Position numbers and translations under genes: made by a program. From contig BFEA01000011.1 in NCBI GenBank assembly GCA_003427395.1, positions 508,991 through 572,990 of the forward strand: a stretch of 64,000 nucleotides of DNA, read 5' to 3'. This DNA comes from Chara braunii. Taxonomy: Eukaryota; Plantae; Charophyceae. Below, in pieces: positions 61,860 to 63,842 of this stretch; within the stretch, counting starts at the first letter, position 1, and every line of letters begins with the position of its first letter. The notes below the pieces were generated by a model that worked only from the letters and a program-made list of their open reading frames with translations, was not told the origin of the DNA and searched no databases.

Positions 61860-62083
61860 TGACCAAGTCGAACCGGAGACTTAACATTTTAAGAACTGTT
61901 ACTGGAAACTCAAGGAAGGTAATTGAAAACGCCTGGTGAACATGAGAGTAAATGAAGAGGGAAGTACTAATGCTAGTGAATGATCAGAGATTCATTGGTT
62001 ACCCCCTCTACATCTATAGATCAGACGGAAAACTACACAGTCCCTACTCGTACGATGAGACTGTTGGGAAAGGATCAGGTTAG
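61860..62083 (+). pseudogene. Small ORF paralog 1 (degenerate)
   Basis: MKREVLMLVNDQRFIGYPLYIYRSDGKLHSPYS resembles TFIEYTFYIHGSDGRLHSTFS of paralog 2. Confidence 0.55.
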
Positions 62084-62902
62084 CATCTAAGGAGAGCTTC
62101 AGGGTGTTTAGGCCTCTCCTTGAGAACTCTGCCTGGAAAAGTTAACTAAAAGGCGATCCACGACTTTAGACACATAATGCTGTTTACAGTAAACGGTGTC
62201 GGGCATGCACAATAGTGCGCGGTGCTCAGTGCAGTTTGGTACTCAGCATAGTGGAGAGCGGATAAGGACTCGTTGTTATCGATTTTAAGCCGGCAACATA
62301 CAGTTCGGACCCTCATTTAACGAGTAATTAAGCAACGCATGGTCAACTGTTGATCAGTGTTCAACCTGCTATTAAGCAAAGCTTTTAATCCGACTCAGAC
62401 AACTTTGGTTCGATCCAGACGACTTTCGTTCGACTCAGATAATTTCTACCCGACTCAGGCAAATTTCACTCAGATAATTTTTTTTCTACCAGATTCTAAC
62501 TAGACTACGGCAACCTGAAGCAGACATGAACAACTCGAACCAGATCCAGGCTACATAAACTTGAGTTGGGCAAGCCTCAAAACAGACTCAGGCCGTTCAA
62601 CGCAGGTTCAGGTAATTCAGTGCAGGACCAGGCAATCCAATGCAGGATTAGAGAGCTTGGCAAAGTTTCAACTCATTTATGCATGGATTCAGCGAACGCA
62701 GGCTCAACCAGCAGATAAGCCCAGACTCGGCTAAATCAGTGTGGACTCAGTAGACTTGGCATAGACCCTACAAGACGAACACAGAATGTATGTACAGCTA
62801 CTTGTCCAATCTGTGTTTAGTTACCCGGATTCCGCAAGCAGCTTCTGGTAGACATCAGGGTCTCTATGCACAGGGGTGAAAGGAGAGGTGTTGCGCAGGA
62901 AG

Positions 62903-63154
62903 ATGGAGGGAGAGAGAAGACTGAGGGTGACATGTACTCTGCATCAAGACAAAAGTGAGGGTTGGGAGGAAATAGTTATACATGGCCTTTGTTATCAGAA
63001 AAGACTCATGATGGAACTGGCCTTAGAGCGAGTGAAGAACTAGACATTTATCGAGTATACCTTCTACATTCATGGGTCAGATGGAAGATTACACAGTACC
63101 TTCTCGTCGGTAGGATCTGTTGAGGAGGCCAGGAGAAAGGTTACTGGAAATTAG
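62903..63154 (+). pseudogene. Small ORF paralog 2 (83 codons, one internal TAG)
   Basis: MEGERRLRVTCTLHQ...MMELALERVKN*TFIEYTFYIHGSDGRLHSTFSSVGSVEEARRKVTGN. Ungapped match to 63588-63842. Confidence 0.75.
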
Positions 63155-63587
63155 TAGAAAAGCTTAGCCATCAGCACCGGGAGAGACAAGTTCACCTCGG
63201 GCAGACTCAGACTAGAGAAAACAGGGAGGTTTCTGTAAACAGATCACAACGGAGCACCTAGTATATCGACGAAACACGAACAACCATTGTATTAATTGGC
63301 ATTTGAGCAACAGTCAATCTGTTTTCTATTCGGTTGTCAGTCAATTATCTAATCAGCAATCAATCCCTTTCCTCTAACTAGCAGCTACAATTCTCTCAAC
63401 AACAATTAATGAACAGCAGCCAGTTAAGTAAGTTATAAACAACACTTCAGGGCGGCAGTCCTAGAGACAGCAGACAAACAACAACCTGATAACAACAATC
63501 TACCCAATAGCCTTCTCATACCTGGATCATCCATGTGTCACCCGTCTCGAGATGGGTGAACTGATGTAGTGATAATTCGGTGAGAAT

Positions 63588-63842
63588 ATGGAGAGCAGCA
63601 ACTCGGTTAGAGTCTCCTGCTCGCTGTATCAGAGCACCGCAGAGACCTGGAGGGAGAGTGCAATTGAGGAATACATTCAGCAGACCACTATGATGATGGA
63701 ACATGCACTGGCCCTCGTGAGGAGTCATACTAAAATCGAATACACATACAATTTGCATGACAAGAACGGTAGACTATGTACCACCATAACTTCAGTAGGC
63801 ACTATCGAGGAAGCAAGGAGGACTGTTGGCAGCCATCGGTGA
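63588..63842 (+). CDS. Small ORF paralog 3, intact 84-aa protein of unknown function
   Basis: Open ATG-to-TGA frame. 37 of 83 aligned residues are identical to paralog 2 by manual ungapped alignment. Confidence 0.6.
   Translation: MESSNSVRVSCSLYQSTAETWRESAIEEYIQQTTMMMEHALALVRSHTKIEYTYNLHDKNGRLCTTITSVGTIEEARRTVGSHR

Follow-up and report, generated by a model that had tools for sequence, protein, structure and literature searches.

A family of 84-residue proteins without detectable relatives outside Chara, under purifying selection and probably carried by LTR retrotransposons of Chara braunii

An LTR retrotransposon usually encodes no more than gag and pol, or these plus one or two extra open reading frames. 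In a 64,000-nucleotide stretch of the Chara braunii genome (here called the window), three small reading frames of one family follow each other on the plus strand, downstream of the reverse transcriptase (RT) of a Gypsy element. The locus raises two questions: whether these frames encode a protein that selection has kept, and whether they belong to that Gypsy, to another element or to the host. A first-pass annotation of the letters had proposed a small-protein family amplified within the 3′ region of the retroelement. The three copies, designated A, B and C, are as follows.

61868 to 62080 (approximate limits), plus strand: copy C, a decayed member, located by tblastn and the family HMM, with its N-terminus read by eye
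62903 to 63154, plus strand: copy A, a full-length member with one in-frame TAG at 63041-63043
63588 to 63842, plus strand: copy B, an intact 84-aa ORF, from the ORF listing and frame translation

For the searches, broken copies were either divided into separate pieces or given an X in place of the stop. The gap-free alignment of the intact copy with the copy carrying one TAG, as first proposed, was reproduced: 37 of 84 residues are identical between A and B (tblastn E 3e-20). The decayed third copy was recovered as well. Positions 61952-62050 of C correspond to residues 36-68 of A (tblastn E 5e-5; family HMM E 1.4e-8), and at the DNA level C and A share 72.5% of nucleotides over 80 nt (dN 0.34, dS 1.3). 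The C-terminal half of C is thus well recognisable, and its N-terminal remnant, which by a by-eye reading without statistics begins at about 61868, is in frame, with three stops and about four codons missing. A fourth member is present in another C. braunii locus, on BFEA01000301.1 (designated L001; positions in it are given as L001 coordinates). All comparisons described here are among these four members, three in the window and one in L001; the family HMM found no further copies in six-frame translations of the window or of L001. The three full-length ORFs (A, B and that of L001) all have A at -3 and G at +4, and these start contexts are strong for initiation.

Nucleotide identities were counted by codon position in the full-length ORFs. 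Between A and B, positions 1, 2 and 3 agree in 51, 55 and 28 of 84 codons, respectively (51, 54 and 27 when 82-83 codons are compared), and the difference of positions 1 and 2 from position 3 is significant (Fisher p 6e-6). Over 82-83 codons the corresponding identities are 52, 53 and 28 for A and the L001 ORF and 45, 45 and 34 for B and the L001 ORF. When the A-B DNA alignment was translated in the two other frames, 13-21 identities remained and each sequence contained 2-7 stops. By the NG86 method, dN between A and B is 0.49 and dS is saturated and not computable; for the three full-length pairs together, dN ranges from 0.46 to 0.67 with dS either saturated or 2.4. Between the three lineages about half of all nucleotides differ, and in each the length has stayed at 83-84 codons, free of gaps. 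Since positions 1 and 2 are conserved, position 3 is near random and the length is kept, selection has acted on the protein and not on the RNA or DNA. The purifying selection that the first-pass annotation had suspected is thus borne out in all three full-length pairs, by the codon pattern and by dN against saturated dS. The 84-residue family is real, and its protein was kept by purifying selection.

The same annotation held that the spacers are not similarly conserved, and a sensitive self-comparison of 60100-64000 gave the same answer: no spacer resembles another at the DNA level, the only DNA match being that of C with A in the coding part, and what the spacers have in common is short patches of CAATCA type. 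The spacers between the ORFs are 430-820 nt long and rich in ATGs. The repeat patches are listed below.

62391 to 62439 and 62596 to 62647, no strand assigned: two short patches of 20-nt tandem repeats in the spacer 3′ of C (TRF)
63318 to 63371, plus strand: CAATCA-type patch 3′ of A (blastn to L001:10629-10681; k-mer enrichment)
63880 to 64000, plus strand: tandem 14-16-nt repeat TTTCAGCAATCAGTT 3′ of B, continuing past the window end (TRF)

A short tandem-repeat patch of this kind lies 100-400 nt downstream of every family ORF, the L001 ORF included (L001:10600-10700). Copy C is followed by the GACTCAG type, and A, B and the L001 ORF by the CAATCA(G) type. In about 2.2 kb of spacer there are 11 occurrences of CAATCA where 0.11 would be expected. 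This enrichment is confined to the spacers; counted over the entire window, CAATCAG by itself shows none.

A HMMER profile of the local copies was run against 1.84 billion protein representatives. One true relative was found (P0001, E 5.9e-13, matched over the full length of the profile). It is C. braunii GBG78682.1, annotated as 'hypothetical protein CBR_g27906', and the family corresponds to its first 84 residues. In L001 the start of GBG78682.1 is a stand-alone ORF of 84 codons with its own stop (L001:10001-10255), which is precisely of family length and needs no gaps when aligned to the window copies, with 41% identity to A and 27% to B. The gene model itself (L001:10001-15647) splices past this stop to an exon about 5 kb away, and opposite this second exon (15120-15644), on the other strand, lies the gag-like ORF of a nested element. 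GBG78682.1 is thus a chimera, as exon 1 ends in its own stop and exon 2 is antisense to that ORF. Pfam gave no match for any piece of the three copies or for the L001 ORF. For ORF B, a word-index protein search gave no match, a feature search of the ESM Atlas no usable match, and an exact look-up in assemblies no record. As far as these databases go, the 84-residue family is without detectable relatives outside Chara. Three bacterial proteins picked up by the profile (P0002-P0004) were rejected as homologues: they match only profile positions 52-76, the β-hairpin, and do so in 7-9 repeats of their own. Hairpin-repeat proteins of the RHS/YD-repeat or DUF5122/MORN type were likewise set aside, since these need many tandem hairpins and the Chara proteins have a single one.

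Copy number was estimated from a 1.07-Gb run, taken as DNA by the guess of the tool, with a longest contig of 66.6 kb. Altogether 509 contig pieces cover 60150-64000 at 90-100% identity; 105 of them are at least 99% identical, 208 fall at 95-99% and 196 at 90-95%, and the differences are mostly transitions. The stretch fits a high-copy, diverged repeat family. Summed depth is 50-400 over 60150-64000 and rises to about 1270-2400 from about 63504 to the window end, ORF B included. This roughly eight-fold jump at about 63504 is not accompanied by a junction visible in the sequence, and the part that carries ORF B is either more abundant or better conserved. From C. braunii, three oligo-dT RNA runs, of each of which 6-13% was read, gave 0, 24 and 0 reads on 60150-64000, with no splice joints among them. 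Most of the 24 reads are only 90-99% alike to the window and thus derive from other copies. Expression of the family is at most weak, being barely detectable in these samples.

The Gypsy upstream of the array has its gag at 55384 and its protease at 56740. Its RT and the region that separates it from the array contain the following features.

58308 to 59087, plus strand: Gypsy reverse transcriptase, first part (Pfam RVT_1 E 4.7e-17, profile positions 1-134)
59901 to 60116, plus strand: Gypsy reverse transcriptase, second part (Pfam RVT_1 E 2.4e-14, profile positions 131-192)
60668 to 60795, plus strand: conserved non-coding block upstream of the array, possibly a degenerate primer-binding region (nhmmer E 7e-5 to L001:8958-9080)

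RT homology breaks off at about 60100. No RNase H, integrase or other Pfam domain was recognised in ten stop-free segments taken from the two strands of 60021-61936. The two RT parts are divided by an insertion of about 815 bp (59085-59900). ARAGORN found no tRNA in 52-64 kb, this insertion included. A motif one mismatch away from a primer-binding-site-like (PBS-like) sequence, TGGTATCGGAGT, lies at 53440-53451, 1.9 kb upstream of gag, and is a candidate primer-binding site of the truncated Gypsy; downstream of it, the leader of that element has no evident cassette of small ORFs. No LTR pair was found in the window between 48 and 64 kb, and Rfam has no family in the window.

The L001 member has a different setting. 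The direct repeats L001:7179-8171 and L001:24666-25647 agree in 92.6% of positions over 995 nt and are cut short where the locus ends. They form a 17.5-kb pair, and the family ORF lies inside this pair, 2.8 kb past the start of the first repeat. A gag-like ORF (L001:22032-22693) is on the same strand, downstream of the family ORF, and has a weak match (E 0.004) to the gag zone of a different Gypsy of the window. No pol was found between the direct repeats of L001, and neither clear TG..CA or other canonical LTR ends nor a polypurine tract was seen. Several other small frames occur in the same interval. Directly downstream of the 84-aa ORF are two 94-aa ORFs on the same strand (11040-11324 and 12534-12818), which form a second paralogous family (28% identity, E 3e-7) for which neither Pfam nor the word search gave a match. 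A tight train of small plus-strand ORFs (L001:20266-21576; gaps of 3-70 nt) precedes the gag-like ORF; two of them, at 21076 and 21370, are paralogous, with 40% identity over 37 aa. The interval L001:12984-19450 is a nested minus-strand element flanked by 300-nt repeats that are 98% identical; an exact PBS-like site, TGGTATCGGAGC, is present at L001:19138-19149, adjoining the repeat of this nested element.

The window and L001 are colinear around the family. The block at 60668-60795, ORF A and the spacer patch occur in the same order as in L001:8958-10681: ORF A and the L001 ORF are 62% identical in nucleotides and colinear, and the patch at 63318-63371 corresponds to L001:10629-10681 (blastn 74.5% over 55 nt, E 0.004). 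In L001, the conserved block contains ATCGGAGC, which is the 3′ two-thirds of TGGTATCGGAGC. Searches for the plant initiator-tRNA PBS and a Chara variant of it gave no convincing match at 60.1-61.9 kb, where this block is the best candidate; as the PBS region it is a possible candidate only.

Taken as a whole, these comparisons suggest that the array belongs to a second LTR element, lying directly beside the truncated Gypsy, of which it is the 5′ internal part and which continues past the window end. We put the probability of this at about 0.6, a figure limited by the dependence on one comparison locus, itself short of pol, canonical LTR ends and a polypurine tract. The second-element reading would run as follows. 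A Chara-specific family of about 84 residues would be encoded by accessory genes of high-copy LTR retrotransposons. These genes would lie in sense orientation within the 5′ internal region, with the LTR and a probable primer-binding site ahead of them and gag behind. We infer this position from one other locus and from colinearity. The array in the window would be the front-end remains of a second, old element beside a Gypsy that was truncated inside its RT, and the rest of it, expected to include more small ORFs and gag, would be located past the end of the window. Ancient tandem duplication would have produced the three copies, after which B stayed intact, A acquired one stop and C became a ruin. 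Of the first-pass placement in the 3′ region of a retroelement, the link to retroelements survives, as the stretch is repetitive and the L001 relative lies within a direct-repeat pair, upstream of a gag-like ORF. Its assignment to the 3′ region of this particular Gypsy is not supported, given that RT ends at about 60100 with no RNase H or integrase and that the array is colinear with the 5′ part of L001.

One alternative places the ORFs in that same Gypsy (gag, protease and RT at 55.4-60.1 kb), as accessory genes downstream of pol and ahead of the 3′ LTR; its RNase H and integrase would then have been lost by internal deletion. They are indeed on the strand of its gag-pol, 1.7 kb downstream of the RT remnant; extra ORFs of plant LTR elements are most often located between pol and the 3′ LTR (PMC7264820); and in the window no boundary of a second element has been identified, nor is a clean PBS or gag of such an element visible. 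Against this, RT breaks off abruptly without any remains of the two missing domains, and the only other family member follows the start of a direct repeat and precedes a gag-like ORF, with no pol before it. Moreover, the block upstream of the array is colinear with L001, and the leader (53.4-55.4 kb) and the coding part of the Gypsy show no relation to L001. We consider an origin within the same Gypsy unlikely.

That the array is a tandem family of small host genes, merely situated among transposons, is very improbable. The sole annotated relative is a 'hypothetical protein' gene model, and each ORF has a good start context and a spacer of its own. But the whole stretch recurs in hundreds of diverged contigs in about 1 Gb, consistent with a high-copy repeat; the annotated gene is chimeric, its other exon being antisense to a nested gag-like ORF; the relative sits within a direct-repeat pair, beside gag-like and other small ORFs; and two of the three local copies are broken. 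The broken state of A and C and the barely detectable expression could also be read as signs that the frames are relics without present function, shaped by past coding constraint or by constraint on the nucleic acid, for instance a structured leader RNA, and the repeat patches beside each ORF could then be the selected feature. To this we give the least credence of all, as third codon positions are near random with the first and second conserved, a length of 83-84 codons is kept in three lineages, and dead local copies are normal for old transposon insertions.

In the AlphaFold2 model of ORF B (pLDDT 74.9, pTM 0.53), a strand (6-14) is followed by a helix (23-43), a hairpin (49-57/63-72) and a second helix (73-82). 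The model of the L001 ORF (pLDDT 69.8) has the same elements plus an extra strand at 19-25. Both were built on 5-row alignments, and at a pLDDT of 70-75 the fold is uncertain. The predicted fold would be a small two-layer α/β domain of 3-4 antiparallel strands and 2 helices. Invariant residues in the family are M1, E2, R8, L13, W21, E23, M36, L41, V44, Y52, T53, G61, R62, L63, S69, A76 and R77.

Fold searches of PDB (by Foldseek and VIA), BFVD and Atlas returned nothing significant or reproducible. The model of ORF B bears a weak likeness to the PD-(D/E)XK core (Rai1/DXO, RecB-family exonucleases, herpesvirus UL24): it matches Rai1 with Z 7.0 and an rmsd of 2.4 over 65 residues, and the nuclease core with Foldseek E 0.01-0.02 (PDB, BFVD) and Atlas TM 0.6-0.67, hits that are weak and mutually consistent. 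Known members of that superfamily are longer than the 84-residue proteins. For the L001 model, the best Z is 5.4, the hits are scattered over families and Rai1 appears at rank 27 with Z 4.4. The family is assigned neither to the PD-(D/E)XK nucleases nor to any other known fold, as there is no conserved D...(D/E)xK, the L001 model fails to reproduce the match and the scores are within chance for small α/β models. A match to the tombusvirus silencing suppressor p19, given by one of the two models, that of L001, is non-significant (Foldseek E 0.06-0.14, TM 0.38-0.45, rmsd above 5). It is the single hint of the anti-silencing or particle-associated effector that the first-pass annotation had suggested, a role that is speculative.

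The invariant residues are mostly those of a hydrophobic core together with E2, R8, E23, R62 and R77, with no catalytic-looking motif; they weakly suggest a non-enzymatic protein that may serve the replication of the element as a small factor binding RNA, DNA or a protein of the element. A more specific proposal, that the 84-residue proteins are accessory nucleic-acid- or protein-binding modules, such as a suppressor of RNA silencing or a helper in RNA packaging, within a virus-like multi-gene leader so far found only in this algal lineage, is a speculation with rather long odds against it.

How does the family compare with known extra genes of retroelements? In plant LTR retrotransposons, additional ORFs (aORFs) have been described in antisense in Grande, RIRE2 and Retand and in sense as env-like ORFs, with function unknown; in most cases a single, larger ORF lies downstream of pol, ahead of the 3′ LTR (PMC7264820). 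Like the 84-aa family, they are extra frames without database relatives, conserved within retrotransposon lineages and present in most copies. They have no sequence similarity to it, and the ORFs described here differ in being 84 codons long, tandem, diverged paralogs and, judging by L001, probably upstream of gag. Accessory genes of complex retroviruses and the additional ORFs of bdelloid rotifer LTR elements (PMC5408684) are likewise genes beyond gag-pol; as far as the accessible part of that source goes, they show no homology to the Chara family, which is known from sequence, and differ from it in position and size. The literature searched contained no description of accessory ORFs in Chara LTR elements. 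Tandem, diverged 84-codon paralogs, apparently upstream of gag, thus make a new protein family on the known theme of extra ORFs.

A lineage-specific small-protein family that is selected and duplicated within transposons would support the existence of virus-like accessory gene sets in the large LTR elements of Chara, and would offer a short, easily expressed protein with which the roles of such genes could be tested. For genome annotation, at least one annotated Chara gene (CBR_g27906) is a chimeric model with a transposon ORF at its base. With local copies that are old and for the most part dead, the window is an example of the family and not an active locus.

Other repeats were noted in the window. 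Three tandem copies of a 295-bp unit (the others 87% and 65% identical to the first) occupy 49804-50684, adjoining long (ATTG)n and (TG)n tracts. At 27720-30219 there is a further element of Gypsy type, which has an aspartyl protease (Pfam E 3e-4) and ORFs of the gag zone. The segments at 22000-24200 and 38900-41500 (minus strand) are 68-77% identical to L001:1-3300.
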